64,000 bases of DNA from Hyaloraphidium curvatum SAG 235-1 (lineage: Eukaryota; Fungi; Monoblepharomycota): positions 372,001 to 436,000 of the forward strand of contig JAIVFI010000002.1 in the NCBI GenBank assembly GCA_025558095.1, written 5' to 3'. Both the position numbers and the translations under genes were made by a program. The notes beneath the pieces are model-generated. The model worked only from the letters and a program-made list of their open reading frames with translations. It ran no database searches and was not told the DNA's origin. Numbering within the stretch: position 1 is the first letter of the stretch; each line of letters opens with the position of its first letter. Below are positions 6,521 through 54,384 of this stretch, in pieces.

Positions 6521-6554
6521 CGCCCAAGAAAGCAGCGCGACGGAGCCCGCCCCC

Positions 6555-6670
6555 CTGTGATTACAGGCTGCGCGGCGAAAGACTCTGATTCCAGGTTGCT
6601 TGCTGGAATGGAGACGTGTGTTGCACGGGAGGAGCCGCGTTGCCCCGCCGCTACCTTCCATGTAGGGCTC
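6555..6670 (+). repeat. dispersed repeat, copy 2 (diverged)
   Basis: gattacaggctgcgcggcgaaagactctgattccaggttg...ccccgccgctaccttccatgtag, preceded by a C-run. Confidence 0.8.
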
Positions 6671-16635: not shown

Positions 16636-16660
16636 GCTGGCCGCCCCCCCCCCCCCCCTC

Positions 16661-16925
16661 CTCTGATTCCAGGTTGCGCGGCGAAAGACTCTGATTCTGG
16701 GCTGGTTGCTGGAAAAGGGGACCTGCGTTTCCCTCGAGGAGCTTACGTCTCCCCACCGCTACCTTTATGTAGCTTCCACCGCGGAGCGGCCGCGAGCGCC
16801 AGCGAGCCCCGCGTCGGCGGGCACGTACCCGGCCGGCGCTGGCAGGCACATGCCCCGCCGCATCTCCCATGTAGCTTCGCGCGGAACGTGGCCGCGGAGC
16901 GGCTTGCGAGCGCCAGCGAGCGCCG
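16661..16925 (+). repeat. dispersed repeat, copy 3, with internal duplication
   Basis: Highly similar to 3841-3988; preceded by poly-C; the atgtagcttc...gcggagcggc..gcgagcgccagcgagc unit occurs twice. Confidence 0.85.
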
Positions 16926-21195: not shown

Positions 21196-21377
21196 CGCGA
21201 CCGCGGTAGCACAACGCGTACAGAGTTTCCGCTGCTAAAAGCTAAGCTAAGAACTCCTCGCTGCTAAAGAGCCATTTATGGCCGTTTCGGCAAAGCTTGC
21301 CCACCCTACCCGCGCGCGCGCTCCACACCGGACAGCCCCGAATTGGAATCGCCCGTGCACCCCGAGCTCGAGAACAA

Positions 21378-22442
21378 ATGCCGCCAATCCGGTGGAGAAG
21401 GTTCATATTTGTTGCTGCCTTCCACCTGGCGTGCTCTAATGGAGCAAACAGAGTCGTCCGCTCGACACGGTCTCCTGTCGGAACCACTCGCGCCCTGCCT
21501 GACGCTTTGCGGTGGAGGATCATTTGCAAATGGGCAGACGGCCAGCCAAAGGCGCAGATCGCACGGGAGCTTTTGGTTTCTCGTCGGAGCGTGGCCCGCG
21601 TCGTTACCTGCTTCACGACGTGGGGCTGCGTGACGAGCCCGCTCACCGGCCGCCGAGGACGCAAACGCCTTCTGAGCCCGGGCCAGGAGCAGCAAGTCGT
21701 AGACTTTGTCGTGGCAAACAACACTCTCTACCTGGATCAGATCGTCTCGCGCGTCTCGGATGCCTCTGGAGTACAGTTCTCCGTCAGTGCTCTTTGGGAA
21801 CTCCTCCACCGGAACGGAATCACCCGGAAGGTCGTCGAGACGGCGGCAAAGGAGCGCTGCGAAGCACAGCGCATTGATTTCCAGCTGAGGATATCAAAGT
21901 ACGACCCGCGAATGATCGTAGCCGTGGACGAATCAGGGTACAACGAGAACACGCTTATCCGCAAGTACGGCTGGGCTCCCATTGGGCTACGTGCGATTGC
22001 TTCCGTTCCGTTTGTGAGGGGCCAAAAGTACAGCATCCTGGCCGCTATGGACATGAAGGGCTACGTTGCTTGGCGTTTTCAAGAGGGGTCAATCAAAGGG
22101 GCTGACTTTTGCGACTTTCTCGAGAAGGACCTCCTCCCACGCATTCCAACGTTCAGTGTCATCCTTCTGGACAATGCAAGCATCCACAAGGATCCGCGCA
22201 TTCGTCCTCTCTGCGAGAGATTCGGAGTTTTCCTCGAGTTCCTGTCACCATACTCCCCGGACTTTGACCCCATTGAGCACTCCTTTTTTCACCTCAAGCA
22301 GCTCATGAGGAGGTACGAGGACTTTGTCAGGACGTTTCCAGACGCAAAGGACGCTATCAACTTCATGTGCACTCAGATTACTGAGGCCATGGCACGGGCT
22401 TGCTTCAAAGGGGCGGGATACCGCATTGACTTTGACTGCTAA
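21378..22442 (+). CDS. IS630/Tc1-mariner DD34E transposase, apparently intact
   Basis: HTH N-terminus, VAVDESG, ILLDNASIH, SPYSPDFDPIE with exactly 34 aa between D and E; probable in-frame 60-nt intron 21392-21451. Confidence 0.92.
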   Translation: MPPIRWRRFIFVAAFHLACSNGANRVVRSTRSPVGTTRALPDALRWRIICKWADGQPKAQIARELLVSRRSVARVVTCFTTWGCVTSPLTGRRGRKRLLSPGQEQQVVDFVVANNTLYLDQIVSRVSDASGVQFSVSALWELLHRNGITRKVVETAAKERCEAQRIDFQLRISKYDPRMIVAVDESGYNENTLIRKYGWAPIGLRAIASVPFVRGQKYSILAAMDMKGYVAWRFQEGSIKGADFCDFLEKDLLPRIPTFSVILLDNASIHKDPRIRPLCERFGVFLEFLSPYSPDFDPIEHSFFHLKQLMRRYEDFVRTFPDAKDAINFMCTQITEAMARACFKGAGYRIDFDC

Positions 22443-22504
22443 ACGAGTACAGGGCTACTAATGTAACGTTGCGATTACTTGCAAATAACAGATGTTAAAT
22501 TCGT

Positions 22505-24931
22505 TCACGAGTTGCTGTACAGATCGGACCCGACCATGACAACATCTTTGGTGCGCTTCCCAGGGAGGCAGTACAAAGCAATGTGCCCTTCAACGGCGGG
22601 AACGTCGATGAGCTTCTGCTGGGGAGAAAGCATCTCGAAGGGGAGGAGGTGAAAGGTCATGGTCTTTTCCCCTGCAGGGTCCTGCCACTCAGCCTTGTGG
22701 TGATCTTTGAACTGGGGACACTTCGTGACGATGCTCCAGACGGTCTCGTCCCCAAGTAGTCTCTCCTTGGGCCACAACGGAGCTGATGCGGCAATCTCGC
22801 CGTCATCGTTGCGCTTGCTCAGCGAAACGGAGTAGGTCGGCTTGAAGTTGCCCATGGGGCCGTCGGGCGTAAAGGCCATAGGCTCAGTCACGCCTGCAAT
22901 ATGGAGATGCATCCAGATGGGTGTGAAAGACGCTGTACGCACGGTCGCACCTGGCGAGGGGCCCGCGTTGGGGGCAGCGAGGGGGCTCATGAACGGGTTC
23001 CCGTCATTCTGTTCTCGGGGGGCACCACCAGTGCCCCAGTCCGGCTTGGACATGACAGGAACGGTCCTGGCAAGACCTTGCTTCCGAAGCGATGCCCGAA
23101 TGGCGTCGAGAGCCGTCGTTCCGCCCGGGGGGTTTTCGAAGTCGACGTAGTCGGGGTCGGTCGGGGTCAAGCCTTTCTTTTCCGTCTCTATCTGAATTCG
23201 GTGTAAGCGTACAAGACAACGCGGTAAAGTAACGATACATACGGCCATCCGTACCCAATGATGGGAGTCCTGAAGGTCGAACTGGCCGTGGCACATGCCG
23301 TGCATCAGGAAACAGCGTGGGCCGTGAACCCGGGTCATCAGGTCCCCGACGTGCGTGTGGCCCCTCGTCTTGCACACGGGAATGTAGAGCTTGTTGAGCT
23401 TAGACAAACGATCGGGCAGGCTGGATGTTGTGCCAGCTGTTCCAACTTCTCTCCCACCAGTGACCTGCTCGGGCCACGGAAGTCTCGTCGACATAGACAT
23501 AACCAGCAAAGACGCCGAATCCTACCACACCGGTCGACGTCCCCAAGGGGTTGGCAGTCTGTGTGGCAGCCTGGACGGCGGCGGGGTCGAACAGGGGCGG
23601 GGCACCGAGAGCGCCGGCCTGGGACAAGCCAAACGTGATGCCCTTGACCTCCACAATGTCGATTCCCGGAATGAGCTGACGCCGGCGCAGCAAGTTACGA
23701 AGCGCCTCGTCATCGGTAACGTGGCAGACATGCACGTCTTTGGGCTTTGTCGAGTTATGGTTGCCCGAGATGTAGGTGAGCAGAGGTGCCCCATCCGAGC
23801 GGTGCGGAACGAATACGCCGATGTGCCAATTGGGGCTATGGATCTGCTTGGCAGCTTGACCCAAGAACGCCGCGATGGTGATGCTGTCGATCGGCCCCAG
23901 ATCGAGCTGGACGGTGGACATCGTAGAGCCCATCATCTTGGTGCCAGTTACAGCCGCAAACTTGACTGGAACATCGCATGTGAGCGTAATGCAAGAAAAA
24001 GCGCGATTGCTGCGATTCCACACCCTCATAGACGGTAGCGAGCTCAGCCTTCTCCTTGGCCGTCAATGGCTTGGTCGGTTTCTCGTCTGCCTTCTTTCCT
24101 CCCTTCTTCCGCTTGGGCCCCCATTCGAAGTAGGCGGCCTCCACGACCACGGACGACTCGCTCGAAGGGGTGGGCGGCGGTTTGGGCAGAGCATGGGTGA
24201 TTCTGGACGGTGTGTCGTCGAGAGGTGCCGATGCCGGCTCGGATTCCTCGACAACCACGGCGGGCTTGGGTACAGTGCTCTGCGTCTGATGCTTCTTGCT
24301 CATGCGTGCTTTCTTCGGAGCCTGTTGGGAGCCATCTTCTGCGTGGTGGCTTGGGGATGGTAACGGTCGTGACGAATCACCATCCAGTGCCCACCTTTCC
24401 CTTGCTGGCAGCCCGAGCAAATCCAGCTCATGCTTTTGCCGGGCCTCTTGTTGATGCCGTTGCACCTTGTGTGCTGGTAAACCTTGCACTCGTCGCAATC
24501 GATCATGGGCTTGCCGTCGTCGAAGTCGTGCCCCTCGGCACCGCAGACGCACTTGAAATCCCAGCTCTCCGCGTCCGCGCTGTCGACGTCCTCATTGCTC
24601 GTAGTAGTGCCTTGTTTTCCTGAAGGGGAGGAGTGCTGTCAGTCCGGCTGCCAAACGGGAACCGACCTGCAGCTCGGACTGCCTCGTAGCACGTCTTGCA
24701 CACGGAGTGGTCGCCGGCCTGGAGCTTCTTCTGTCCCTTGATTCTCGTGCCGCAGACCTCGGCATTGTCACGGCTCAAGGTGATCCAGCGCAAGTAGTCG
24801 GAAGGGCGGCCGGCCTTCTGGAGCGTGGACTCGTGGGCGTCGCGCTGCCTGCAGTTCCTGTTGCAGACGACGCAATTGTCACATAGAGCGCATGAAATCT
24901 GAAACTTCTCCGGGTCCTGCGGAGGCGCCAT
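22505..24931 (-). CDS. PHD-finger protein (multi-exon cargo gene)
   Basis: WDFKCVCG...MIDCDECKVYQHTRC...WICSGC is a C4HC3 PHD finger; extra N-terminal Cys cluster; long unknown C-terminal exons. Confidence 0.7.
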
Positions 24932-25019
24932 TGCCTTCTTCCGTGGGCTGGGGGGGGGGGCAGATTCGAGGACGTTTGGTGCCTGAGTTTTGCGCGCGCG
25001 CGGGTGGGCAAGCTTTGGA

Positions 25020-25232
25020 GAAAGGGCAATAAGGCTGAACAAGCCGTCAAGCGGCTAGCCCTGACAAACATTTCGCCTATGCACGATGCAGGAACAGCGA
25101 AATCAGTCTGCCGGGGTAAAGGTTTGTGGAGGCCACGATCAACGCAGAAGGGCGAAAGTGCCCGATCAGCGAAGTACGGGCAAAGAGGCGAGAGAATAAA
25201 TAAGAGGGAGAGGAGAGGAGGGATGGAGGCGT
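25020..25232 (-). ncRNA. candidate omegaRNA region of Fanzor A
   Basis: Directly 3' of the Fanzor stop; hairpins atttcgc/gcgaaat, tgca/tgca, agccg/cggct; function inferred from Fanzor locus architecture. Confidence 0.3.
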
Positions 25233-28200
25233 TCACGACTTGGAAGGAGCCGCACGACGCCGGCGGGCCGCGGTGTCCCCGCTGCCTTCCGAGCCTCGAG
25301 CGCGACCCCCAGAGCGTCCGCCGGGCATGTAGTCCCCATCTCCGTCATCATCAGGAGCACCCCGAGCCTGCCCACGAGCACGACGAGGAGCGGCGGCATC
25401 CTGGGCGGGTTCGACGGCCGTCGGGCTCGCGATCTCCTGGGATTCGGCAGCCCGCAGTCCGCGGGAAGACGGGTGCGCACGGGCTCCCGACCCCGGCTTG
25501 AAGCCGAGCGGCCGCGCGCCGTCGAACAGGAGCTGGTGCCAGAACAGGTAGAGCATGTTCCGCGCGCTGTTGATGTCCCGGTTCCAGCGCACGTGGCAGG
25601 TCCGGCACTCCTTGACGCGCCACGTCTTGCCCACGAGCTGGCCCGATTTGCACCGGTTGCACTTCTGGCTGCTGCCGTGCTCGTGGATCGAGACGCCGAC
25701 GACGACCTTCATGAACTCGCGACGGTAGGTGATGAGGGGCGCGGAGGCGTGGCCTTGGCTGTTGTGGGGGAAGACAGCAGCGCCCACAGCGGCCAGAAGC
25801 GTGCCGATCCGGCAGGTCAGGGGATCCTTGGCACCTTGCCGCACCATCCAGAAGAGCACCTGGCGGGAGCGGAAGTAGCGCGCGAGTCGGCGCCGCCTGG
25901 GCATCAACGAAGAGTGAGCGAGGTCAAGGTGGTCTGCAAGCCGCGAGACTTGCCTCAGTTCCTCCTGACCGTAGAAGGTCGTGACCTCCCGAAGATCCGC
26001 GAGAACGTAGTCGGCGTACTCGGCGTAGCCCTTGTACGTCAGAGACCGCGAAGTCGGGATCCTGGACTGCCACTCGGCGATCGAGATCCCCGTCCGCGCG
26101 AGCGTCGTCTCCTTGAGCATCCGCTGCAGCTTTGCCTCGTCGCGGACGAAGCCAGACTTGTGGCGGTACAGCGAGGTCGAAGCACGGCGCTCGATCTCCC
26201 AGCTTCCGCGGGTGCCGAAGCCCGTAATCCCCCAGATGCGGTCCCGCGCGGCGTCGGTGCCCACGCCGAAGAACTCCTTGAGGTGGCGACGGTGCTTCTT
26301 CTCCTCCGATTTGGAGCGTTTGCGGTACGTGGGAGGAGGGGAGCGCGCGGCGGGGTGGCTGCGGCGAACGGGATCATCGAACTGCGAGTACGGGCGGAGC
26401 TGGTGGAGCGGGTTGTTGCACACCGGCGGGCGACCCTCCCGGGCGGCCTTGGCGGTCTCGTCGCAGTAGTGCTGCCGGCGCAGCTCCTTGATCCGGCCAG
26501 TGGAGAGGAGGGTCTTGGGCTGCTCCCTGATGATGATGTACCGCGTGATTTTGCCGTCGGGGTGCCGCACGACGATCGCGCTGTCGAGATCGGACAGGCG
26601 CCGGTTGGCGTTGGCGTACCCGTTGCGCGGGTCGAGCAGCTTCAGCCCAAGCTTCTTGCCGATGGTGAGGTCACCGGCGAGGAACTCTTTCCTGTTCGGG
26701 TCGAAACCGGCCGGCGTGCAGTTGAGCCTCCCCGCGTTGTAGCCGATCCGCTCCTTGATCTCCTCGCGCCCCTGCGGAGTGTCCAGCGCGTAGCGCGTGG
26801 CCGCATCGCCGAGCCGATGCTTCTTTGGCTTCGCGGGCTGTCCTGCGCTTGGGACGCGGGCACCCCTCGAAGGCGGCTGCGCCGGCTGCCCTGCACCCGG
26901 TATACGAGCACCCCTCGAAGGCTGCCCGGCGCCTGCGCTGCCCGCCTGCTTGCCGCCGCCCGCCTGCTTGCCGCCGTTGTCCGACTGCCCGCTTCCAGAG
27001 CCGCTCCGATTCGTCTCGCCCCGCTTGCGCACGATAACGATCTCGTACGTAGTCGTGAGGAGGTGCAGGCTGGCGCCGTCGTAGCTGAAGTGCCGAGGGA
27101 TCGACTTGGTCGTGGCCGTCTCGTGGAAGGTGAGCGCCGAGACGCCCTTGCGCGAGTCCTTGCTCCCCGTCTTGCGCCGCTTGCCGGTCCGGAAGATCTC
27201 GTTGAGCCAATACCCCGGGTCCTGCTTCATGACCGCGACCTCGGGCAAGGCGTGCGCACCCGCCCTGGAATCTGTCAGGATCGAGCTATGCACAGAGAAA
27301 CAATGAACTCACTTGACCAAAGCCTCGTGAATGGCGGTCATGGAGAAGGGCATCATCCGAGGACGGAAGCGGATCTCCGTCAGCAAGGTACCGGGAGACT
27401 TGGATGCGATCCAGGCGGGTGCCGCCGGTCCAGCCTTGGCCGCGTCCTTGCGCGAAGCTTTTGAAGCGGCCGTCGCCTCGACAGCAGCGGCGTGAACGCT
27501 GGCGATGCCTTCCCGGAGTTCGCGCTCGCGCTCAAAGAAAGGATCGTCCTCGGCCGCATCTTCGTCTTCCGCGACGCGGTCTTTGGAAAGGTGCTTCTCG
27601 AGCTGCACCGGCTCGCCGCTGCGTGTACCGTGCAGAGCCGCCGTGCGCATCCGGACGGAGCGCTCTCTCTCGAAAAAGTCATCGTCCGCGCCGTCGTCAG
27701 CTTCCTCCACGACCAGGGGCTCCGAGAACGGCGAAGCGGAAAACTTGGTGTACCCGTGATCGGGCCCCCGGTGCGGCACAGGTACCGCGGCCCGCTTCTC
27801 CGCCCGCCTCTGCTCGCCCGGCCGCGGCACGGCTTTGCCGTGCTCCCAGTACACCCTCTTCAGCTTGAAAAGGCGGTCGATCCGCTGCGCCTCCGTCTCG
27901 GGCTTGCGGCGCCGCTGCGAGGCGAGCTGGTGGGCATCCGTACCCGCCTGCGGAGCATCGACCGGCGCGCCGACGTCCATAGCGTCTCCGGCAGCCAGCG
28001 TTCCACCGACATTGGACGGACCGCCAGCACCGGATGACAGTCCTTCCCGCGCGCGGAAGAGCTCGGGGTGGTTCTCCCGATTCCTTGCCTCGATCCGGCC
28101 GCGTTGCACCTTGAGCTTCAGCTTCACCGCGTAGAAGGGATGAACGCTGGCTGACCAGTCCTTTTCCTCCAGCCCCGCAATGCCGAGCACCTTGGGGTCC

Positions 28201-31200
28201 GTCTCGCCGGCCTCGCGCCTGCGGATGAGCTCCCGCACCTCCCCTTCGGTCGACCGGCGCAGATGAGGCGGCACGTAGAGCTGGCCCTCGCGCGCGTTGT
28301 GTGCGCGCATGGCGTCGTTCGTGGGGAAGAAATAGGGCAGGTAGACGAAGGGGAGGTGGTGCTGGAAGCAATAGTCCATCGAAGCACGGATCTTGTAGTT
28401 GGCTTTGGTGATGGCCAGCGCCACGGCCTTCAGCTCCGGGTCGCCAAAGGTCCCCTTGAAGCGCCCCTCCGTATACTCCTGGAAGTGCTCATAGCTCTCC
28501 TTCTGGTCGTCAGTCCACACCCTTTCCTGCGTGATCCGCGGCGGGAACGAATGTTTGATCGGCGGCAGCCCCTTGGCCTCGCGCTCCAGATGGCCCCAGA
28601 CCACGTACGTCGGCGGGGGCTTGGGGATGCCTTTGCCAGAGGTCTTGCCGTTCGCACCGGAAAGCTGCGACCCCTGGACGTGCTCGGGATAGCAGCCGCG
28701 AAGCTCCTGGACGCAGTAAGCACCGAGCAGCGAAGCGTCGATGCTCATCTCGTAGGCGCGGTCTTTGCGAGGCTGCAGGAGGATCGACTCGCGCACCGCG
28801 GGGTCGACCTGCGCAAAGACCGCGCGGCGGAGGCAGTGTACGGCGGGATTCTGCGATTCGGCGTCCCTGACCCAGAAACGGGCCTCTGAGTGAACACGAC
28901 GAAAGCTCTTGTCGTCCGAGAGATAGTGCCCAAGGCCACCAGGGCGCTTCCAGAGCGGGAGAAGGAGGTCGTAATGCCGGTACCCGCACAGCAAGAGGCA
29001 CAGCACGGGATCACCCTCGCGCTTCTCGGCAGCGCCTTCGACCGCGATCTCCCGAGCGACCTCGAAGTGCAGACCGTGCTCGCCGTTTACCACGCAGATC
29101 CTGACGCGCAGCTCCTTGACCAGGGACTGCAGCGCGAAGTGATCGCCCCAGTAGAGGGCCTGGTCCGTCCCTTCGACCGCGGGTGCGTCCAGCCGCATAC
29201 GCTCCGCCAGCTGCGCGACGATGCGCTCCGGAACCAACTCCGGCGCCTCGAACTGCTCCAACCCGAGGCCCGCGGCCCAGCGAACCTCGTGCATGGGGTC
29301 GATCGTCTCGTCCAGCCTCGCGAAGAGCTCTTGCCGACGTTGCGGGCTCGTTGCCTCGTCCTCGAGCTCCCGACGCTCTTCTGCGGTGAGCTCAGGCGGC
29401 CCAAGATGCCCTTGCCGAAGTCCGTCGAGCAGGCACTGCACGAAAAAGTGCGCGGGAGTTCCAGGCTGCCGCGCTTCGCCCATCACCTCGTCCGCCACCA
29501 CGGAGCGCAGCTCGCGAACGGGACGACGGGCCCCCGAAATGCGGCAACCTTCCGACACCGATTCGAACAGGCAGTCCCCCTTGTCCGGCATGGTCTTGAT
29601 TTTCGCGAGCACCGCACCAACCACAAGGTTGCTCGCCCCGCGCGAATCGATAAGCTCCTGAATCTTGTCGATCTGCCGCACGAGCTCTCGGGCGCGAACC
29701 TTCAAAGTCTCGGCGGTGTGCATGTCGTAGGCGCTCAGCTGGCCCCGCATCACGACCAGGGAATGCACCTTCCCGCGCACAATGTCCTGGTCGATGGGCG
29801 ACAGAGGGTGCCGGCACGCGAGCTTGAGCAGCGCCGGAAGCTCTTCCTTCTCAAAGGCCTGGATTTGGAGGGCACAGTCGGAAAGGCTGGCCGCCGCGTG
29901 AACGTCGATGTTGAAGTGCCGAAGCGCCGAGAGCTCCTTGGCAGTCAGCTCGGGCCGGCAAAGGTCTGCGATCGGCTCGCCGCCGTGGGCAAAGTCCACG
30001 ATCTTGTCCGCCACCTTGGACGCCTTCTTCGAGGGCAGCGCAACGTCCTCGAGCTTGTAGGCGCGCTTGACGAACGCCTTCTCGTGCGAAACGAAGTTGA
30101 CGGCGATCTTGGTCTTGAAGTTCGCCTTGGCCATGGAAACCATGTCCATCACGGCGGTCTCGACGATGCCTTTGTAGGTGAGCTTGAGCCGCGGTAGGTG
30201 CGGGACGAGGATGCGCTTGGCGGCAGCCAACATGACCACGACGAGAAGCTTGTTCTTCCTCTTCCTCTCCGCGACCTCCTCTGCGGTCTCCTTCCGCTTC
30301 CCCGCATCCTTGGTGGCTGCCTCACCCTGCTGCGCGGGCGCGGGCGCTGCGGCGGAGCCCTCAGCGCCCTCGGGGTCGATCGTGATCTCGGCGGCCGCGG
30401 CGTCGACCTCCATTCCCTCGCGCGACTCCTCGTCCAGCGAATCGAGCATTGTCACGTCCTTGTCGCCGCCCGAGTCCTGCGGCAGCTGCATGGACATCAG
30501 CGCGTCCTCGAACGGCTCGTCCACGTCGATGGCGTCGGCGCTTTCGTCCGGCCCGCTCCCCCCGGCTGCATCATCGCAGCCTTCCTCCCCATCCCCAGCA
30601 TCCCCAGCATCCGCCCGCGCCGACTCGCGCAAATGCCCGGCCTGCTCGTACAGCTCCTCGTCGAGGCGGTCGACGTCGACCTCGGCCTCCCGGGCAAGCA
30701 GTTCCGCGGCGCACTTTCCGATCTCCTCGATCTGACGCCGGAGCTCGTCGAGGTCGGGGGGCTTCGGCACCTTGACGGATGGCGCGTTCCTCGCGTGGGC
30801 ATTGCCAAGGTTGGGCGAGACCCTGGAGCCCGTGGCCAACGACTTGACCACCGAGTAGGCGATGGCCCACAGGTTCTCAAAGTCTGCGTCGCGCAGGTCC
30901 TTGTGGAACGGCCCTATGTCGTAGTGCTTCTCGCCGTCCGGATCCATGATGAGGTGCATGGTGCAGTTGACGAGCAGAAGGACGACGATGACGATTGGGG
31001 TCCCCTCCAGCGCAGTCTTCTCGAGCACCTCGATGGTCTGCTTGGCAAGGTCGCCGTAGCTCTCGAACTGCCTCCCGTCCAGCACCACGGTCCTCTGCAT
31101 GGCCTCGCGCAACACAGCAGCCACGTCCTCTCGCCCGCGCAGGGTCTCGGTCGATCGCGCGTACCAGTTCAGCGCGCTGGTGGGACAAGAGCAGGGCCTG

Positions 31201-33805
31201 TCGACGAGGCTGGCGGCGCATATCGGGCAGGTTTCGAGGCGAAAAGGGGCAGCAGCGCCGGTCGCGGTTCCGCCGTCCGGCAGTCGGCGCCGGATAGCCT
31301 CCCGCATGATCTCGTAGGCCTTGTCCAGCGCGTCCTTGGGCATGAGGTCGCTGTGAACGAAAGGCATCAGGACGAGGTCCGCGCGAGACGAGGAAAAAAC
31401 CTTACTCGATCCGCATGTGCGCATGCTCCGCGGTTACGTGGGTGACGTAGTTGAGCGGCGAGTCGAGCACCTGCTCGCACCCCGGGCAGCCAAAGTGGCG
31501 GCGCTTGTAGTGTCCCGCCAACCACTTCTCCGCCTCCTCCTTCGACTTGAACCCCCTCGCAACCTCGTGCGTCGGGCTGTCGCCGCAGCAGAAGCAGCGC
31601 ATGTTGGCCCAGGGCTCCAGCATGGCGACTGTCCCGCGCGTGACCCCGACCCAGCGCTCCAGGTAGCGATCGAGCGCGGTCCGCTGCTGGCTTCCCGCTT
31701 GTCCCAGGTCGTCGTACCCGAGCAGAGCAAGCATCACGGTGAGCTCTTGCGCGCCCTGGTACACCGCCTTGGACGCCAGCTCGTGCAGCTGCACGGGGAT
31801 GGGCCTGTCGCCGGTGATCGCGATCCCGGCCGCAGCGAAGGCCTCCTCGATGGTTTGCGCCTGCGGAGCGCGTTGCATCAAGGCGATGCACCGGGATCCC
31901 AGCTACGAGCCAGACCCACCGGCACGAATGCGCTACGTGCCCGGAAGTCGAGGCCCGCTGCGCGCGCCACCGAGCCGCCGACATCGACAAACTCCTTCCA
32001 AAACGGCACTATCTCCGCGTGTACAGCGGGTCTCCACTCGACCTTTCCGGACCCCTGCGCCTCAACCGGCACGCGAACGTTGACGTAGAGGGTCAGGAGC
32101 GAGAGGTCGTTCTCGGAGAGCCGCCGCACTAGCTCCCCGGTTACTCGCAGTCGTATGTCGATTCCGATCTTGGCGAGACCATTGCGGATGCTCAGCGCCA
32201 GATTCTTGTCCTTGGCCACGGGGTGCTTCATGCCTCCCAGGATCGTCTCGACGAGCAAGATACCCCGGTTCGGTGCTGCGCCCTCGGGCTCCTCGTCCTC
32301 GCGCTTCAGGGCCAACTTGAACCGCGCCAGCGTGTTGTGCATATTCTCCATCATGCTGTCCCTTTCCGCGATGCTTGCGGTCACCTTCCGAGAAAGGAGC
32401 AGCTCCTCCACCTGCTTGAAGAACGCGCGGGACACATCCGACGAAGCGTTGACGAGCTCAGGGACGAGGTGAAGATCAAAGTAGTAGTCCTTGATGTTCA
32501 GGAGCGGTAAGGCCGGCAAATGCTTGTCGGCGGCCGCGAAGAGCACCTTCAGAACCCCTTGCTCGTTCCTGCCACCGCTTATGATGCGCGCCAGCGCTTT
32601 CGCGCTCGAATGATCCCTGCTGTCCGCGATGAGGTCGTCGACGGTATAGGGAAGGTGGTCGTCCTTCTCGCCGAACACTGCAGAACGGGGCACGTCGGGA
32701 GCAGGATCCGTGCACGCGCCAGTCGCGACGGCAGCCCGTGCCCCGGCGGCTCGAAGCAAATGCTCTGCGACCTTCGGGTGAATGGCTTCCAGGAAGTCCG
32801 CGAGTCTCCCATTGTGGGCAAGCTGGCCGACGATGCAGAGGTGGAAGTTGACGAACTCGTCGGGCAGCTCTCCGTTCCACTTCTTGCGCTGGGCGTCCGA
32901 GTACTTCTTGCGCTGGGCGTCCGAGTACCTTCCAATGACGTCGCCGACGGGCGAAAACGGCTGCGCGAGAGTCAGCGCGTGTCCCAGGAAGTCCGATTTG
33001 AAAGCAGGCGGAGCCGTCTGCCCCAAGGCGATAACGTGCTTGTTCAACGTCGAGTTGAACTTCTTCCCGAGTCGGCACCCCGAGGACACTTCGACAAACT
33101 CCTTCAGGGTCCAGGGGCGCGCGAAAGCGCTTTCTTCGATCCCCAAGAGCGACGCAGCCTGTGATGAGGACGCGAGAGGGATGAAAGAGTCAGAATTCGG
33201 CAGGGTGATAGGAAACGAGGGAGGCGTCTGAACTCACGGAGCGTTCAATCTCCTCATGTGAAAACGAGCTCAATGAAGGCAGATCCTTTTCCGCAGTAAC
33301 GTTTGACGGCGCAGCCTGCGCTCGACGGGCGGGGACCGGTGCTGCAGCGCCCGGCGCGTTCAGAGAAAAGGCATCCCCGGGATGCGTGGCGCCCCTGCCC
33401 ACCGTGGCCGCCGTTGTCGCGTTGCACATTGCTCGGACAGGGTCCTGCGTGATGCTGAGTGCCGTCTTCGCACATTCTGACGCGTTTGGGCGCGCCCGTT
33501 CGACGGCCTCGTTTTCTCTGTGAGGAGCGATCGTGCCACGAATCCGTGCGGCCTCTTCTTCGCTCAACCTCACACAGTGCCGAAAAGTCGGCGCCAAATC
33601 CATCGCCGCAATTTCGCCAATCGCCCTTTCTATCGATCTGACCAGCTCCTGGACCGTGGACGGACAGTCCTTGCGGACCCTGCTCTTGATCATCCAGAAC
33701 ACGTGCTCAGCCGGGTCAAACTCGGGCGATCGCGGCCTCAAATAGACAATATCCAGGCCGTTCCTGCGAGCTATCTCCTGGACTGCTTGGTAGGCTTTGC
33801 CAGTT
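25233..33805 (-). CDS. giant Fanzor A (ZnF + OTU insertion + RuvC), spliced in frame to the transposase C-terminus
   Basis: RuvC-I GFDPNRK, RuvC-II IHEHGSSQKCNRC, ZnF/RuvC-III CRTCHVRWNRDINSARN; introns 33159-33237, 31861-31919, 31351-31405, 27265-27312 and 25897-25953 join all ORFs in frame (~2,750 codons). Confidence 0.85.
28960..29600 (-). other. OTU cysteine protease/deubiquitinase domain inside Fanzor A
   Basis: MPDKGDCLFESVS (Cys box), YWGDHFALQSL (WG motif), LLLCGYRHYDLL (His box). Confidence 0.8.
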
Positions 33806-34558
33806 CCTTTTCGACGCAAGATCGGGACCCGTCGGGCCTCCGGACGGTCCTCCAGGGGGAGCCGTGGAAGCCCGCGTTGTCGGCGATGACCTTGACGGGA
33901 CCAGTGCTATCACCCGCCTTGATGGACTCGAGGAAGGCGCAGAATCGTTCGGTGGTCATGTTGCCCTCGTAGATCACATAGGACACTATGTTGCCGCCAA
34001 AGTTGCCCTCCCTCGGCGCCATGGAGATGCACAGGCAGAGGAACAGCTTCTTCCCGCGGCCGGAAGGCAATTCGATGACAGCACGCTCTCCCTCGGGAGC
34101 ATAGCCGTAGGGAAGGGGCTCGTTGATGTGGAACGACGACTCGTCGAGGGCGAGCAGGTTGCCCGACGCGGCTGCAGCCTGAATGGCCTCGTTGAAGTCG
34201 AGATGGCGCTGCGGCTGCTCCAGTCGCTCCACGTTCCTGATAGTTAGCCGCTTCCGAGTAATCTTTCGCGCCCGAAGCAGCCGCGAGACGTGCTGCTGAC
34301 AGATGGAGACGCCGAACTCCTCCTTCACCGCCTTCGCCAGCTCCTTCTGCGTGATGACAACCTTGCCCGTCGCCATCTTGACGATGAAATCGACGACTTC
34401 AACTGTCGCTTTCCGGGGTCGCACCGAGGATCGTAGCCGTCCCGAAGGTAGTTGCGAACCATTCTCGGCGAGACGTCAACAACGCCGCCGATTTCCGCGA
34501 CGCTCATCTGAGTACGCTGCCGCAAGCGCTGAGCAACAAGGCGCTTCTCAATGTGCAT
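33500..34558 (-). pseudogene. IS630-like transposase module of element A (two frameshifts)
   Basis: HTH, LALDESSF, VIADNAGFH, SPEFDPAE; 16-nt deletion at ~34423 and 1-nt deletion at ~33806 relative to copy B. Confidence 0.85.
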
Positions 34559-34697
34559 CGTTGGTTTTGGGCTTTTAGGAGCAAAGGGATGGAACGACCT
34601 TGCGGAAATGAAATTTAAGGGACTTTGCGCCAGGCGTCGGGGTTTGCAGCTCTACGGGACCGTAAACACACGCGACTTACGCCTCCTCATCACGAAA

Positions 34698-37652: not shown

Positions 37653-38102
37653 CGCGTCTCGAAGAAAAGCTAGAAGTTCGACGCGTTATTTGTTTTCATC
37701 ACGCCGGGCGCTGAACCAATGCTCGCGTAAAGGAGCCAGACGTTGTCACCGGCGCGCCCGCGGATGATGCTCCCGGACCGCCTACGACCGTGGCTCTTGG
37801 GTTAAGGTCCCGGAAAAACCGCCAACGACCCTCGCGGGGTGGGCCACGAATGTGGCCGCGGGTCACCAGCGACGACCCACGACCTTTCTGATGCACTTGA
37901 CGGGCTCAGCACGCACGTGCCGACTCGGATGCTGATTGGTCTGTGGTTGGAACGAGGCCCGTGGTGGATGGCTCTTCAGTGCAATTCGCGAGGCGGCACC
38001 GGCGCGGTGCCGTAACTCAATCGGGACTACACTCGGTTCAGTACCCCCTCTCCTTTTTCGGGTCTTAAAGTGTGGGAATCGAACGAATTCCTTGTATTGC
38101 AA

Positions 38103-39132: not shown

Positions 39133-41340
39133 CTATTCGTCGCGGCGGCTGGAATCAACGACCCTTCGCACCGCTCCTAGAATCAGAGGGGTGACCCCCG
39201 GCTCTGCCTGCAAAGCCGCCAGGACATGGGACTCGCCGTGGGCAATCAGTCCCACAGCGATTCGCTCGATCGCCAGTACAACGTTTGCGCTCACGATGTG
39301 GAGCGCGCCCGAAGACTTCAGATGGCCAAACAGTTGCTCATGGGCTCCCGAGCGCCGATGCTCCGTCGCTCGGATGGCAAGAATGCCGGCCGCATATCCC
39401 ACACGATCCGCCCATCTCCTGCGGTCGCGATCGCCGACGCAGGCATCCCGCAGTGCGATCAATTGGGCAAAAGCTCGCTCGGCCGCCGTGGGATCGTCGT
39501 CTGCTCTGCTCTCAACCAGCAAGCTCCAGGTCCAAGCATCGGGCCCGCTGCCCCGCTCGCGCATCTGCGCCAAGATACGATCCGCTTGTTCCAGATCTCC
39601 TGCCCACAAGTGTGCAGCAATGAGCCAGTTCCACGAAACGATGTCATGCTCTTTCAACTTTCGGAAGGCAGCAAAGGCCCGGGACGAGTCTGGGACGCAC
39701 GAGGCTAGAGCGAGCGCCTTGCGACCGGAAACATGAAGCCGCGAGGTGTCTCCCAATTGGTGCCGGAGCTCTGCAAGTCTCGGAGAAGCATCGTCCACCT
39801 CTTCCAGGCGACTAAGATAGCCTCGTGCAAGCGTCCGGCCAAAACTGGGCTCCTTGTCTAGTGCAGGCTGCGAGCCGCGAGCCTCGACGACAAGGGAATC
39901 TAGGCGATCGAGGTCCCACCTGTTCATGTAGTGCAAAGCAAGCTGACGGAAGATGGCCGGATCTTTCTGCACATTATACCGTTCCATTGTCGCGAGGGTC
40001 TGCAGCACCCCATCGGCGTTCCCGTCCTCGACAAAGTCCTTGAGCGCATGCGCATAGAACCCGCTCCGAGGCTCGATGCCCATGCTGTCCATCTGGGACA
40101 GCACGCGCTGCATGCCCGCGCTGTCGCGCAGGTGCGCGAGTTCCTTGTAAATGGTGAGGTACACGGATTCGTCCGGTTCGACGCCAAAAGATTGCCCCAT
40201 CGTGGCTGCCAGTCGCAGCGCCTCGCTGGCGTTTCCAGCGCGGACCCAATCGCGCACGACGAACCTCAGCACGTCCAAGTCCGGCTCGCAGTCCATATCC
40301 AGCATGGCCGTGAAAAGTGCCATGGACGACGTAATTGAAGGCGAATACGCAATCACGTTGCGGAAACTGTTCAGGTTCGGCACTAATGTGGAGTCTTTGC
40401 CGCTCGCAGCCGCCAGCAGAAGGTCCATGGCATTTTGGAACTTGCCGTTCCGGGACATCACCAGGAGCAACAGATTCCACGCCTCAATCCGCTGCTGACC
40501 GCGCAGCGCCGGCCCGGCATTCTCCCAAGCACGGCGCGCCAAGGCCACATCATTCAGCGAGGATGCAACCCGGATGCAGGCGGCATGTGTCTCTGGCGCC
40601 ATCGCCAAGCCGCGGGTGTGCAACGCCTTGTAAAGCCGCACGGCACCAACCTCGTCTCCAGAACGCCCAAGTTCACGGAAAAGCAGATGGCGCGACTTTG
40701 CTAAAGCTTTGTCGGAGACGAGTTTCTCGAGCTCCGAAATGAACGACTCTGCTGCGGCCAACCCCGGCTTTCCCCGCAATGCAAGATCACGAACGATGCG
40801 CTCCGCGAGTTCCTCGACAACCCCAGTGGGGAATGATGCCACTCGTTGGGGTTCTTTGTGGCCAGGCAGCAGACCGCGGCCGGCCATATCGTCCATGATG
40901 CGCGCGCACGTAACCGAACCGTGGAAATTGGCTTTGCTGCTCGCTGTCCTCCAGCCCCTGGTCCATGTGTGCAGCCAGCCCCCCGAGGCCTGGTCGGCGT
41001 AGAGTCGAAGAAGGGCAACGTAGTCTGCTTCTCGCAGTAGCAGGACTTCCGACGCGGTTGATGAGACGCTGCCGTAAAGTGCAGCCGCCAAGGGCCAGTT
41101 TCGGGATGAAACTGCGGCTCGGAGCTGATCCACCCGGTTCCTCCGTGGAAACGATGCTTCATCAGCCCGCTCATCCCGGCCAGCTTCCGCAGCGGCCGAC
41201 AACGTAAAGTGGCAAGCGGGTTGCACAAGCCGCGACTCGCGATGTTTGCCAGACAATTGCACACTGGCAAAACGCGGCACCAATTCCGAAAGCTCGCGAG
41301 GCAAGAGCCAACGTCGGAGCAGCATCGCGGTAGTGGCCAC
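39133..41340 (-). CDS. pentatricopeptide repeat (PPR) protein, mitochondrial
   Basis: Repeated ~35-aa units (WNLLL...A..L..M...PD/PN) in a 735-aa ORF. Confidence 0.8.
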   Translation of the reverse strand: MATTAMLLRRWLLPRELSELVPRFASVQLSGKHRESRLVQPACHFTLSAAAEAGRDERADEASFPRRNRVDQLRAAVSSRNWPLAAALYGSVSSTASEVLLLREADYVALLRLYADQASGGWLHTWTRGWRTASSKANFHGSVTCARIMDDMAGRGLLPGHKEPQRVASFPTGVVEELAERIVRDLALRGKPGLAAAESFISELEKLVSDKALAKSRHLLFRELGRSGDEVGAVRLYKALHTRGLAMAPETHAACIRVASSLNDVALARRAWENAGPALRGQQRIEAWNLLLLVMSRNGKFQNAMDLLLAAASGKDSTLVPNLNSFRNVIAYSPSITSSMALFTAMLDMDCEPDLDVLRFVVRDWVRAGNASEALRLAATMGQSFGVEPDESVYLTIYKELAHLRDSAGMQRVLSQMDSMGIEPRSGFYAHALKDFVEDGNADGVLQTLATMERYNVQKDPAIFRQLALHYMNRWDLDRLDSLVVEARGSQPALDKEPSFGRTLARGYLSRLEEVDDASPRLAELRHQLGDTSRLHVSGRKALALASCVPDSSRAFAAFRKLKEHDIVSWNWLIAAHLWAGDLEQADRILAQMRERGSGPDAWTWSLLVESRADDDPTAAERAFAQLIALRDACVGDRDRRRWADRVGYAAGILAIRATEHRRSGAHEQLFGHLKSSGALHIVSANVVLAIERIAVGLIAHGESHVLAALQAEPGVTPLILGAVRRVVDSSRRDE

Positions 41341-47906: not shown

Positions 47907-50342
47907 TCAGATCTTTGCAACCGCTCTCTCCGGCCTCGAGTCGGCCGCCTTGATCGCCCGCACCTCCTTCCTCGCCCTCGCTTCCCAGGCCAGCACGCGT
48001 TTGCGCTCCACCCCAATGGCCTCCCAGCCCCACCATCCCGACCCCATCCAGCGCCGGCGCAGGTGGCGCTGCACCTCCTCTAAGGGGGTGTCGGGCTCCT
48101 CCGGGACCAAGCGCCGCAGATTTCTCAGCGGGCCAGCATCGCCGTCCGTGGCCAGGTCCCAGCAGAGCGCCAACACGGGCGAGAGGTCCCGGGCGTCGGG
48201 CTTGGCGAGGTAGTACGGCTGCCGGAAGGCGTGCATGTCGGCGATGGTCCGGAACGCGGCCTCGTGGTCGCCCGTGCGCGCGGCGCCGTTGGCGAGGCCG
48301 ACAAAGAAGCGGGACCACTCCTTCCGGCCTCGGCCCTCGTCGGCGCGGCGCTTTTCGCGCTCGCCGGGGCTCAGCGAGAGCCGCTCCAGCGCGGCCTCCT
48401 TCCGTGCGTCCCAGTCGAACAGGTGCTCGCGGAAAAAGGCGTCCCCGTGCCTCGCCATGAGCCGCGCATCGTTGGTGACGGCCGTCGCGACGTAGAACCT
48501 CGAGAGCCCGCCCCACTCCTGCCCCTGGAGCAGCGGTTCCAGCACCTCCATGGTCTCGACCAGTTTCAGGCGCAGGAGCGGGTGGCGCCCGTGTAGCTCC
48601 AGGTAGCGGTGCACGGCGGCCGCGCCAACGAGGCGACCGCCCTTGGAGCCGTCTGTGTGTCGGTCTCTGCGTACCATCCAGTTAAACAGGGCCCTGCACT
48701 CTGCTACGGCATCGTCGACGCTCGCGATGCCGTGCAGCAAGTTCGGGAAAGGAGGAAGGGCGCCCTCGGCGCGCTCCTCCGGAAAAGTCAGTAGGACGGC
48801 GGCCGGAGGCACCGTTGGCGGCGGGTCGTAGGCCGGGGGCAGATCGGCCGGTTCCGCGGGCTTCCAGCCCGCCGCGGCAAAGAGGTCGCCCGCGACGTCG
48901 CCGAGCGGGACGGCCACGCCGTCAAAGGGCACCGGGCCCCCCAAGTCCGACCCGTCCTCGGCGCCCACGCCCGACTTGCGCGCGAGCCGCCGCCGCTCGA
49001 GCCACTCCGCAAACGGCAGCACTCGCCTGGAAGCGGCGGGATCGCGGGCGTGGTCCCGGATCCTGCGGCCGCGTGTTGCGCGCTCGACCTCGCCCTCGAG
49101 GTGCACGAACCAGTCCCCCACCGCGTACGCGTACGCCATGAGCATGTTTGCCGCGAAGCGGTCGTCGGGCGCGATCTCTGGGTGCGCCATCGCGGCGTTC
49201 CAGACGTCGCGGGCGCCCAGCAGGTCGCCCGCGCGCGCGCAGGCCACGAGCAGGCCGTCGTAGGTGGCCAGGCTCGGCACGAGGCCGCGTGCCAGCATCT
49301 GCGCGAGCAGCCTGAAGGCTTCGGCATGGAAGTCGGGGCGGCGCATGCACGCGGCGATTGCGGCGGTGTACGTGAATGCGGTGGGCTCGATGCCCCTGTC
49401 GCCGACCATCTCGGCGTGCAGGTCGAGAGCGCGTTCGGCGCTGCCGTCCTTTGCGGCGCACGACATCATTGTGGCGTACAGGTCCCTGTCTGGCAGGATG
49501 TTGAGGGCGTTGCGTGCGTGGTCGAACGTGCGCCACGCGCGGGCCAGGTCGCCCGCGTCGACGCAGCCGGCGATGAGGGTCGTGAAGATGTGCAGGTTGG
49601 GAGCGATGCCGCGCGCCTTGAGGTCCTCGTACAGGCGGTATGCGGCATGCAGCTTGCCGGCGTCGACGCAGCCCTTGATGAGCGTGCCGAAGGTGTGCTC
49701 GTTTGGGGCGACGCCCGCGGCGAGCATGGCGCGGAAGGCGGCGGCGGCGGCGGGCAGGTCGCGCGCGCGCACGTGTGCCAGCAGCACGCCGTTGTGCGAG
49801 CGCACGTCCGGAGCGAAGCCGAGGTCGGGCAGCAGCTCGAAGGCGTCGAGCGCGGCGGCGGTGCGGCCGGCGAGCGCGCAGCCGTGGATGATGCGGTTGA
49901 CCTCGAGCAGCAGCGCGGGCGCGCCCCCGCCCTCGGCCCCGCCCTCGCCCCCGGGTGCCTGCTCGCCCGCTAGCCCGGGTGCCTGCGTGGGTGCCCCGTC
50001 TGCCCCGTCGGCGATGACCGGCTCGAGGGCGGCGAATGCGGCGCGCAGCGACAGCAGCCGCGGGTGCGGGGGCGGGTGGCGGGGCGCGGGCGCGGGCGCG
50101 GCCACGGCGTGCAGGATGCCGTCGGCGAGCAGCGACACGCGGGCGGCGGGCGGCCCTCCCGCGGGCGGCGCCGCCTCGAGCGCGTCGGCGCGCGCGCGCA
50201 GCCCGCGCAGCGTCGCAGCCGCAGCCGCCTCGCGCCGCCGCCGGAACGCGTTCGCCGCGCGCTGCCGCTGCTTGGCCGCGCTGTGCTTGGGCCGCGCCCA
50301 GCCGGGGACGGGCACCGGCGGCCGGCGGAGGTGTCGAAGCAT
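47907..50342 (-). CDS. PPR protein (Ccm1-like), mitochondrial
   Basis: Canonical tandem PPRs (PDVRSHNGVL, PNEHTFGTLIKGC, PNLHIFTTLIAGC, PTAFTYTAAI). Confidence 0.9.
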   Translation of the reverse strand: MLRHLRRPPVPVPGWARPKHSAAKQRQRAANAFRRRREAAAAATLRGLRARADALEAAPPAGGPPAARVSLLADGILHAVAAPAPAPRHPPPHPRLLSLRAAFAALEPVIADGADGAPTQAPGLAGEQAPGGEGGAEGGGAPALLLEVNRIIHGCALAGRTAAALDAFELLPDLGFAPDVRSHNGVLLAHVRARDLPAAAAAFRAMLAAGVAPNEHTFGTLIKGCVDAGKLHAAYRLYEDLKARGIAPNLHIFTTLIAGCVDAGDLARAWRTFDHARNALNILPDRDLYATMMSCAAKDGSAERALDLHAEMVGDRGIEPTAFTYTAAIAACMRRPDFHAEAFRLLAQMLARGLVPSLATYDGLLVACARAGDLLGARDVWNAAMAHPEIAPDDRFAANMLMAYAYAVGDWFVHLEGEVERATRGRRIRDHARDPAASRRVLPFAEWLERRRLARKSGVGAEDGSDLGGPVPFDGVAVPLGDVAGDLFAAAGWKPAEPADLPPAYDPPPTVPPAAVLLTFPEERAEGALPPFPNLLHGIASVDDAVAECRALFNWMVRRDRHTDGSKGGRLVGAAAVHRYLELHGRHPLLRLKLVETMEVLEPLLQGQEWGGLSRFYVATAVTNDARLMARHGDAFFREHLFDWDARKEAALERLSLSPGEREKRRADEGRGRKEWSRFFVGLANGAARTGDHEAAFRTIADMHAFRQPYYLAKPDARDLSPVLALCWDLATDGDAGPLRNLRRLVPEEPDTPLEEVQRHLRRRWMGSGWWGWEAIGVERKRVLAWEARARKEVRAIKAADSRPERAVAKI

Positions 50343-50367
50343 TCCTGCGTCTATTTGTTTAGGCTGC

Positions 50368-51554
50368 TCACAGCTGCACCCCTTGTGCCCGACTCTCAAA
50401 GAACCGTGCGAGCACCTCGTCCGACGCGCGCCCCGACGTGATCTCGCCCTCAAACACCTCGCGCTCCAGCCGGTCCATCGTCGTCCGCACAGCCTCGGAC
50501 GCACGCAGCTGGTCGATCAGCGCGTCAGAGATCTGCCGCCACATGGCCTGCCGGACCGATCGGTGAGCGTCCGCGCCTCCGACGCAAGACAGCACGCCCC
50601 GCCCGAGATCCCACCTTGACGTTCTGGCGCCCGCGCTTCTCGTCCCACTCGCCCTTCTCGACCATCACGCGCTGGTACTCGCACATCGCGTCCCACACCT
50701 CGGGTATGCCCTTGCCCGTGAGCGCGGAGACCCGCATCGCCCGCGGCCGCCAGTGCGGCGACACGGGCGGCAGGTACATGAGCGCGGAGCGGTAGTCGGT
50801 CTGCCCGCCGGGAGGAGTGTCACACGAATTGCCCACGTCCGGCGGTGTACGGCGGGGAGCCGCCCACCTGGGTGCGCGTCGCCTGCGCCTCGAGCTCGCC
50901 GTCGGCCTTGTTGACCACGAGCAGGTCCGCCAGCTCCATGACGCCGCGCTTGATGCCCTGCAGCTCGTCGCCGCCGGCAGGCGGCACCATCAGCACGTAC
51001 ATGTCCACCATGTCGGCCAGGATGACCTCGGACTGGCCCACGCCGACCGACTCGACAAACACCGTGTCGTAGCCTGCGGCCTCGCACAGCAGGATGGCCT
51101 CCTGCGTGTTGCGCGCCACGCCGCCCAGCGCGCCGCGCGACGGCGACGGCCGCACATAGGCGGCGTCCGCGGCGGCCAGCCGCTCCATGCGCGTCTTGTC
51201 GCCGAGGATCGAGCCGCCGGTGCGCTGCGACGACGGGTCGATCGCCAGCACGGCCAGCCGCCGGTGCGCGCCCAGCAGGTGCACGCCGAACGCCTCGATG
51301 AACGTCGACTTGCCGACGCCCGGCGGGCCGGTGAAGCCGATGCGGAACGACCGCCGCGCGCGGCCGTACCGCGCCCGCCGCGCGTGGCGCAGCGCCGCCG
51401 CGAGCAGCTCCTGCGCCGCGAGGCGGTGGTCCGCGCGGCTCGACTCGACCAGCGTGATGGCCTTGGCCAGCGCGCGCCGCGACCCGCCGACGAGATCGGC
51501 AAACAGCGCTCGCGCCTCGGCCGCCGCAGCCTCGGCTGCTAGCCCGGCGATCAT
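50368..51554 (-). CDS. MMAA: methylmalonic aciduria type A GTPase (MeaB/ArgK family)
   Basis: [53 protein letters not shown]; two introns. Confidence 0.95.
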
Positions 51555-51666
51555 TGTTGGGCGGGATACCCGGGGTATGCTTATTGACTTGTTTACTACC
51601 TCCCTTCCTTCTTGCAGCTACTATATTGTCTCATACTCAATACGCTGGGGCCGGGGCTAGCACGTT

Positions 51667-54072: not shown

Positions 54073-54128
54073 CGGGAATGGTTCACCTCGTCACTAGCTT
54101 ATGGTGGTCTGTGTTAGCCTAACTCATA

Positions 54129-54384
54129 CACAGTTTCCTACGGAACCCTTATCCATCCTCGGAAACTTTTCGAGTGCTAAAAGAGGTCCCTAAAAGGGTA
54201 GATCAAGCCATGATCACGATCTGTGATTCGGCTGCCCAGACGCGAACGTCCGGGAGTGTTGGTGAAGATGTCCGTTCACCAGAGCCCGGCGAGCGATCCC
54301 GATCGCGTCGCACAAGGTAAGGTGTCCGGAGAGGAAGGAAGCAATAAATAGTGTCCAGGAGGCACCCGATGAAGGTAGCGCCCT
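54129..54384 (-). ncRNA. candidate omegaRNA of Fanzor B
   Basis: Between the stop and the putative element end; minus-strand hairpins tggtgaa/ttcacca, cccggacg-TTCG-cgtctggg, agcc..atcac/gtgat..ggct, ctcg/cgag. Confidence 0.45.

Follow-up and report, generated by a model that had tools for sequence, protein, structure and literature searches.

A predicted transposase–Fanzor gene and its diverged copy

The 64,000-nucleotide stretch of Hyaloraphidium curvatum SAG 235-1 analysed here (assembly GCA_025558095.1, contig JAIVFI010000002.1; hereafter the window) holds two decayed elements of ~9.6 kb each, called copy A and copy B, in which an IS630/Tc1-type transposase appears to be joined in one spliced reading frame to a giant Fanzor1 nuclease. 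The setting is that of a eukaryotic chromosome, gene-dense, with ~61% GC and short introns; the window is host chromosomal DNA, and a virus or provirus is excluded. Copy A is inserted between RPL22 and Gtr2/RagC and copy B between an unnamed gene and Nse4, and in both cases the flanking host genes stood head-to-head before insertion. The three best solved-structure matches of RPL22 are ribosome entries, which we take to be fungal. Homology searches were run exon by exon and intron phases were verified by arithmetic; the only joined sequence used was that of the two non-coding flanks on either side of a Tc1 insertion in copy A.

Copy A lies on the minus strand. Exon 1 opens with the transposase (33540–34558), which has two helix-turn-helix (HTH) motifs and catalytic D, D and E codons at 34145, 33881 and 33708, and which, compared with copy B, is broken by deletions of 16 nt near 34425 and 1 nt near 33808. 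The exon continues through an Ala-rich linker (33238–33539) to intron 1 (33159–33237), where an in-frame stop at 33190–33192 means that intron retention in copy A could yield a free transposase. Exon 2 (31920–33158, 413 codons) encodes a helical region that found no family or structure match in profile and structure searches, and it includes an in-frame 24-nt tandem duplication (32879–32926). Intron 2 (31861–31919) is followed by exon 3 (31406–31860), which encodes a Cys/His zinc-finger-like module, and by intron 3 (31351–31405). Exon 4 (27313–31350, 1,345 codons) comprises a Cys motif, an acidic tract, helices resembling the Fanzor1 recognition (REC) region from ~30130, and inserts, one of which is an OTU cysteine-protease/deubiquitinase domain (28950–29627) with its catalytic Cys (29573) and His (28976) present. 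Beyond intron 4 (27265–27312), exon 5 (25954–27264) contributes WED-like strands, the RuvC-I Asp in a DPN motif (codon 26702), a clade-specific Cys/His insert and the bridge-helix region. Intron 5 (25897–25953) precedes exon 6 (25233–25896), which holds the RuvC-II Glu (25682), a C4 zinc finger (ZnF), the RuvC-III Asp (25577), a basic low-complexity tail and the stop codon.

Four of these introns are GT-AG and intron 5 is GC-AG; all contain branch-like motifs, and their phases are, in order, 0, 0, 2, 2 and 2. Exons 2–6 encode 2,568 amino acids (aa) with no stop or frameshift, and with the two deletions restored the exon lengths add up to 9,045 nt, or 3,015 codons including the stop. Both the five introns and this total had been proposed in a first-pass annotation made from the sequence, and both hold. 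The domain order is HTH plus DDE_3/IS630, helical region, Cys/His fingers, acidic tract, REC-like helices, OTU, RuvC-I/bridge and RuvC-II/ZnF/RuvC-III. It confirms the transposase, fingers, OTU and RuvC/ZnF assigned in that annotation, and leaves its REC and WED labels as tentative ones that reflect collinear motifs.

The annotation had also recognized a second, diverged copy with the same order, and this too is borne out. Copy B (54385–63564, minus strand) has introns 1, 2, 3 and 5 in the phases of copy A (62193–62258, 60911–60970, 60371–60425 and 55007–55063) and lacks intron 4. It has frameshifts near 62924, 61915, 61100, 59470 and 57718, its transposase Glu is replaced by Gly (62705) and its OTU has lost both the catalytic Cys and His, but the RuvC D/E/D residues are intact (55785, 54783 and 54678). 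Outside RuvC, the proteins of the two copies are 30–45% identical. Within exon 2 of copy B (61060–61130), ~70 extra bases and a change of frame could reflect an insertion or an additional intron.

The nuclease part is an enlarged Fanzor1

By its catalytic motifs, the nuclease part is identified as Fanzor1. Against a profile built from ~690-aa Fanzor1-like hits, the RuvC-II/ZnF/RuvC-III segment of exon 6 scores 99.9% with hhalign, and the end of exon 5 matches the Fanzor1 RuvC-I/bridge region at 94%, a profile similarity that points to Fanzor1 rather than Fanzor2 or TnpB. The best PDB sequence match is GtFz1. The C-terminal RuvC layout is D ... E-x6-C4 zinc finger ... RD. The best candidate for the RuvC-I Asp is the one in the DPN motif, which each of the seven exon-5 sequences spanning this site retains, and the catalytic RuvC residues are kept in every family member aligned, both copies included.

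Collinear motifs and a weak match (hhalign E = 0.067) suggest the REC-like and WED-like assignments, and an AlphaFold model of exon 5 (predicted local distance difference test score 48) gave no fold match. The OTU insert falls below the Pfam cut-off (E = 4e-4), and all listed Foldseek matches of its predicted model are OTU domains. Altogether, the Fanzor core is spread over ~1,640 aa and is joined to a further N-terminal extension of ~1,370 aa.

The transposase block has a recent history of its own

The exon 1 fragment matches Pfam DDE_3 (E = 3e-9) and NF033545 (E = 2e-21), and the transposase is assigned on its sequence to the IS630-Tc1-mariner group. Its catalytic spacing is DD57E rather than the usual 34–37, with an insert of ~23 aa between the second Asp and the Glu (33881–33708 in copy A; 62879–62705 in copy B). 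No close relative was found among 5.8 billion proteins.

Between the two copies this block is 92% identical, whereas the rest is near saturation. Four-fold sites differ by 5–9% in the transposase core and by 47–69% in the linker and every Fanzor exon, and the synonymous divergence (dS) is 0.12 in the block against 0.7–1.4 elsewhere. Because four-fold divergence is so low relative to the linker and Fanzor exons, the block must have been exchanged or homogenized recently between the copies. A ratio of nonsynonymous to synonymous divergence of 0.27 indicates that the transposase was still under selection after that exchange. Judged by their lesions, neither present-day transposase can work: the one in copy A is frameshifted, and the one in copy B is frameshifted and lacks its catalytic Glu. 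We rejected the idea that a young IS630 element had entered two Fanzor genes separately, given that no terminal inverted repeats (TIRs) and no stop were seen, and that diverged homologous sequence flanks the 92% block on both sides.

One reading frame appears to run from transposase to Fanzor

In both copies, the frame runs on past the stop position of the neighbouring ordinary Tc1 transposase and through ~100 linker codons without a stop up to a splice donor, a stretch that is open in 0.04 and 0.05 of shuffles. The linkers of the two copies are homologous (33% protein identity) despite near-saturated silent sites. A strict intron pattern occurs at 28 places in 128 kb (both strands of the window); each of the two linkers is closed by such an intron, in phase 0 with the exon that follows. 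Moreover, intron 1 of copy B is 66 nt long and free of stops, and the fused frame there is thus independent of splicing: an uninterrupted frame of 487 codons (61458–62918) takes in the second transposase Asp, the linker, the in-frame intron and part of exon 2, whose first ~90 codons are in the homologous frame. Towards the 3′ end of exon 1 the copies share a single in-frame Met, which lies inside the last helix of the transposase. Downstream of each Fanzor stop there is a poly(A)-like motif, whereas none is present after the transposase. A codon-position test on the DNA alignment failed alike on the linker and on the known coding exon 3. One further candidate signal, a stop-start overlap in intron 2 of copy A, was rejected and read as a branch-point motif, since it is out of frame in copy B.

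The in-frame link claimed at first pass therefore stands at the DNA level: neither copy has a stop beyond the DDE fold, the homologous linkers are open, intron 1 is in phase 0 in both, and copy B has a splice-independent frame. The DNA supports one fused reading frame with a giant Fanzor1, and it is probable that the working ancestor made the fused protein.

Several observations weigh against this conclusion. In copy A the two frameshifts are confined to the transposase, and all 2,568 Fanzor codons have been spared (chance 0.013–0.021), a lesion pattern that hints at a Fanzor independent of the upstream frame, with its own start. Public gene calls over copy B give two fragments, and in sister elements (described below) the transposase and Fanzor are separately called open reading frames (ORFs) in different frames. 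The fusion is predicted from the genomic DNA of two broken copies, and the relatives read as DNA stop before the transposase. Because the transposase block is recent and shared, the missing stop up to 33540 counts as one observation, not two. Finally, no TIR, target-site duplication (TSD) or conserved RNA structure was demonstrated around copies A and B.

These points could be accommodated by two functional units, in which the Fanzor is made mainly from an internal start in the 3′ part of the transposase or the linker, the transposase is made separately or by intron retention, and the fusion is a minor read-through product at most. The step in dS at 33540 separates halves with different histories, as in chimeric Mariner-Fanzor elements (PMC3627910), the in-frame Met codons of copy A at 33693, 33603 and 33429 could serve as starts, and the stop within intron 1 of copy A could end the transposase. 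However, the copy B transposase frame meets no terminator before exon 2 even when unspliced, no linker Met is common to both copies, the linker has been kept open in the transposase frame in both, and the transposase has no poly(A)-like motif after it. We consider this two-unit arrangement possible but unlikely.

Giant Fanzors form a family

Exons 5 and 6 were used to query 1.8 billion representatives, which returned copy B and about twenty close fragments from metagenomes or sequencing runs (L001, L002, L014, L015, L016 and L017 below). On the contigs of these relatives, the large exon, exon 5 and the final exon all have counterparts. Intron 2 is found at the same place and phase in copy B and L001; intron 3 in copy B, L001 and apparently L002; intron 4 in L001, L002, L014 and L015; and intron 5, there as GT-AG, in copy B and the same four relatives. 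Twelve last-exon sequences group as one clade with a Shimodaira–Hasegawa-like approximate likelihood ratio of 98 in a quick tree (147 columns, no Fanzor2 references). Because introns 2–5 recur in position and phase in relatives of one clade, the giant Fanzors make up a real family.

None of these contigs extends as far as the transposase. The exon 3 finger module is kept in copy B, L001 and L002, as well as in one sister element. The OTU is optional, being absent from L002 and located further downstream in L001, where its Cys/His motifs are present. Homology between the first exon of L001 and the end of exon 2 was not significant, and the link between them consists of intron position and phase. 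As separate observations, the basic C-terminal tail of L014, L016 and L017, after the RuvC-III exon, seems to be divided by more introns into small exons, and L015 has an additional intron within exon 5.

Two sister elements (those of P0080 and P0136; ENA ERZ27297709) are known from the called ORFs of their contigs, without the DNA. P0080 is a 1,252-aa Fanzor with an N-terminal exon-3 finger (hhalign 90%, 0/300 shuffles); a same-strand DDE_3 gene of 610 aa precedes it at a distance of 25 nt. The element of P0136, from the same sample, also opens with a DDE_3 gene, of 398 aa. To judge from these gene orders, the pairing of transposase and Fanzor is old, a history compatible with or without a spliced link. 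Large Fanzors of this sister lineage (1,252 aa) appear to be intron-free, with the finger at their N terminus and the DDE_3 gene directly upstream. A 1,366-aa protein of Amoeboaphelidium occidentale (KAI3659768.1) looks like a tandem pair of Fanzor1 and is probably a gene-prediction merger.

Other searches did not enlarge the family. Exon 4, the transposase and an exon-5 profile yielded nothing new in word-index searches of proteins; scans of viral, prokaryotic-genome and metagenome contigs found no family member, the metagenome matches listed being generic RuvC motifs; and exact look-ups of the copy B transposase ORF and the copy A exon-4 ORF matched no record.

Element ends and a candidate omegaRNA

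The start codon of copy B lies ~108 nt from the next host gene, which begins at ~63673 on the plus strand, and the left end must therefore be very short. The sole upstream sequence common to both copies, and to them only, is a non-coding 15-nt motif (34595–34609 in copy A and 63597–63611 in copy B, minus strand), a candidate left-end or transposase-binding/promoter motif.

On the other side, the 3′ non-coding tail of copy A is split. Its proximal part (25030–25232, minus strand), with a poly(A)-signal-like motif at 25195–25202, is homologous to the copy B tail (54100–54384, minus strand); its distal part (21200–21278, minus strand) is a candidate right end or 3′ part of an omegaRNA. Between them sits a separate Tc1/IS630 DD34E element (21279–25029, plus strand) with a TA duplication and imperfect TIRs of ~28 nt. 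Once this insertion is set aside, the two tails can be aligned over ~280 nt (shuffle p ≤ 0.01). They share a 12-nt motif that is unique in the window (21219–21230 and 54127–54138) and lies 262 nt (A) and 259 nt (B) after the stops. In each copy this candidate right-end motif finishes with TA. The conserved tail is a candidate omegaRNA, placed where a Fanzor omegaRNA is expected. Folding z-scores of only about −1 to −2 were obtained, no shared structure emerged, and the tail has no Rfam match. A comparison of left and right regions gave no significant inverted match, the conserved end motifs matching in inverted orientation over 5–7 nt; the copies are old. Similarity between the tails of copy A and L014 was not significant at the end motif.

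Two relatives, L014 (3656–3705) and L016 (~1565–1612), share a T/A/G-rich motif in their tails (shuffle p = 0.01) and a similar stretch occurs near 54095 in the copy B tail, possibly a family end motif. The inserted Tc1 element (3,751 bp) has an apparently intact transposase (21378–22442, plus strand) and minus-strand cargo ORFs, including a PHD finger (24303–24638) and two unassigned ones (338 and 220 aa). The core of its TIRs is similar to the 15-nt motif upstream of copies A and B.

Other features of the window

The window also contains a nuclear RNase P RNA gene (37787–38037, plus strand; Rfam 84.7 bits) and two multi-repeat pentatricopeptide repeat genes (39133–41340 and 47907–50504), the second in a stretch of 71–74% GC (48001–52000). 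A dispersed repeat of ~130–150 nt occurs in three copies (3827–3988, 6538–6665 and 16652–16813) that are 79–87% identical, and is possibly a small non-autonomous element.

A proposed homing model for the element

We favour, with a probability of roughly 0.6, a fused transposase–Fanzor1 element with a homing mechanism, for which cut-and-paste transposition combined with RNA-guided re-cutting of the empty site is the likeliest route. The ancestor would have been an IS630/Tc1-type transposon of ~9.6 kb with a single spliced gene, encoding a ~3,000-aa protein composed of an HTH-DDE transposase, a flexible linker, a helical region, zinc fingers and a Fanzor1 swollen by inserts. By analogy with Tc1/mariner biology, the transposase would have moved the element by cut-and-paste, here into promoters shared by host genes in head-to-head arrangement. 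If OMEGA systems are a guide, an omegaRNA made of the 3′ end of the element and flanking host sequence would be loaded on the Fanzor part. The latter would cleave the empty donor site again, and homologous repair templated by the sister chromatid would restore the element. Transposon-borne OMEGA nucleases have been proposed to act by homing of this kind (PMC13565253, PMC10432273). In a fusion, the two activities would always be expressed together and the nuclease would arrive in cis where the element has just left, and the OTU, finger and acidic inserts might be accessories that provide chromatin access or protection from ubiquitin-dependent turnover.

The first-pass annotation had listed homing or excision repair, CRISPR-associated transposon (CAST)-like integration and a polyprotein as options. 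The first fits the intact RuvC D/E/D triad, which is what makes homing likelier than a CAST-like mechanism; the others fare worse, given that the nuclease is not dead, no adaptor is encoded and the OTU is optional.

Guidance of insertion itself was considered in two forms. A single-chain device, in which the RNA-guided Fanzor steers its own DDE transposase and the guide sets the (re-)insertion site, would be a one-protein, spliced counterpart of a CAST; we hold it to be improbable. Slightly more doubtful still is eukaryotic CAST-like integration in which the Fanzor binds a guide-matched target and the tethered transposase inserts the element alongside. Such a device would require a covalent link through a long flexible linker, the large inserts between transposase and nuclease are otherwise unexplained, and both copies occupy the same type of site, bidirectional promoters. 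Yet open, AT-rich DNA explains the promoter preference, and an unrelated Tc1 element hit the same place. Furthermore, a flank-derived guide targets the donor site rather than new sites, no TnsC/TniQ-like partner is present (no Pfam or NCBIfam match in any exon) and the RuvC triad is intact, unlike in known CAST effectors, which are nuclease-dead.

Domestication is comparably doubtful, and a little more so. Here the copies would be an immobile pair of host genes derived from a transposase–Fanzor element and serving, for example, RNA-guided chromatin targeting or deubiquitination. The low copy number (one annotated protein found), the host-type intron signals, the failure to find TIRs or a TSD and the spacing of the copies, 29 kb apart, would suit such a history. 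However, both copies are broken, their flanking genes differ, their proteins have diverged strongly outside RuvC, and related elements adjoin DDE_3 genes.

Least probable is a polyprotein from which the OTU protease would release transposase and Fanzor separately: some viral OTU-like proteases do process polyproteins, and the OTU fold is confirmed, with Cys/His in copy A and L001, but the domain is missing from L002, catalytically dead in copy B and differently placed in L001, and because it is optional and internal, within the REC-like region and away from any domain boundary, such processing is very unlikely.

Relation to known systems and implications

The closest precedents for the homing element favoured here are the Tc1/mariner Fanzor1 elements PGv-1 and PUl-1 (Bao and Jurka 2013, PMC3627910), which likewise have a 5′ DDE transposase and a 3′ Fanzor1 and show the same chimeric pattern, a shared transposase block of ~1 kb with divergent 3′ parts. 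Those elements have separate ORFs, TIRs and TA duplications, whereas copies A and B have a continuous spliced frame, no demonstrated TIR and a Fanzor part ~4 times larger. With the Fanzor1s SpuFz1 and GtFz1 they share the RuvC-II Glu just before the C4 zinc finger, RuvC-III, the bridge region, introns and a 3′ non-coding tail that is conserved; the average length of Fanzor1s in the literature is 620 aa and the maximum ~800 aa, and the N-terminal extension, OTU insert, Cys/His modules and transposase are additions to that plan (PMC10432273, PMC10711439, PMC10530073). IS630-linked TnpBs of the DDE-6 branch (Altae-Tran 2023, PMC10691335) also pair an IS630-family DDE transposase with a TnpB/Fanzor nuclease, but the two are distinct genes, the ends are symmetrical and the hosts are mostly prokaryotes and giant viruses; no fusion is mentioned there.

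Like the elements described here, CASTs (Tn7-like, Cas12k) encode an RNA-guided protein together with a DDE transposase. They combine a nuclease-dead effector with TniQ/TnsC and a CRISPR array; in copies A and B, by contrast, RuvC is intact, and no CRISPR array was found among the repeats of the window. The element is not a CAST and would function in the manner of a Tc1/mariner–Fanzor1 element. In the literature covered, mostly open-access papers and with Repbase outside its scope, we found neither a natural transposase–Fanzor fusion nor an OTU-bearing Fanzor. What appears to be new is the union of a transposase and a giant Fanzor in one ~3,000-aa frame, their pairing as separate genes being already known.

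Reported Fanzors are 500–800 aa long and lie beside a transposase, and a standing question is what makes cut-and-paste transposons retain them. Whether or not the two parts are fused, the data point to an unannotated Fanzor1 clade of more than 2,000 aa whose members carry zinc-finger modules and have gained an OTU domain in two separate places, and whose genes are split into fragments by gene callers. If the fusion is real and its RuvC active, it would tie both activities together in one molecule and make the homing model directly testable, and the protein would offer a natural template for asking whether guide-directed insertion evolved in eukaryotes.

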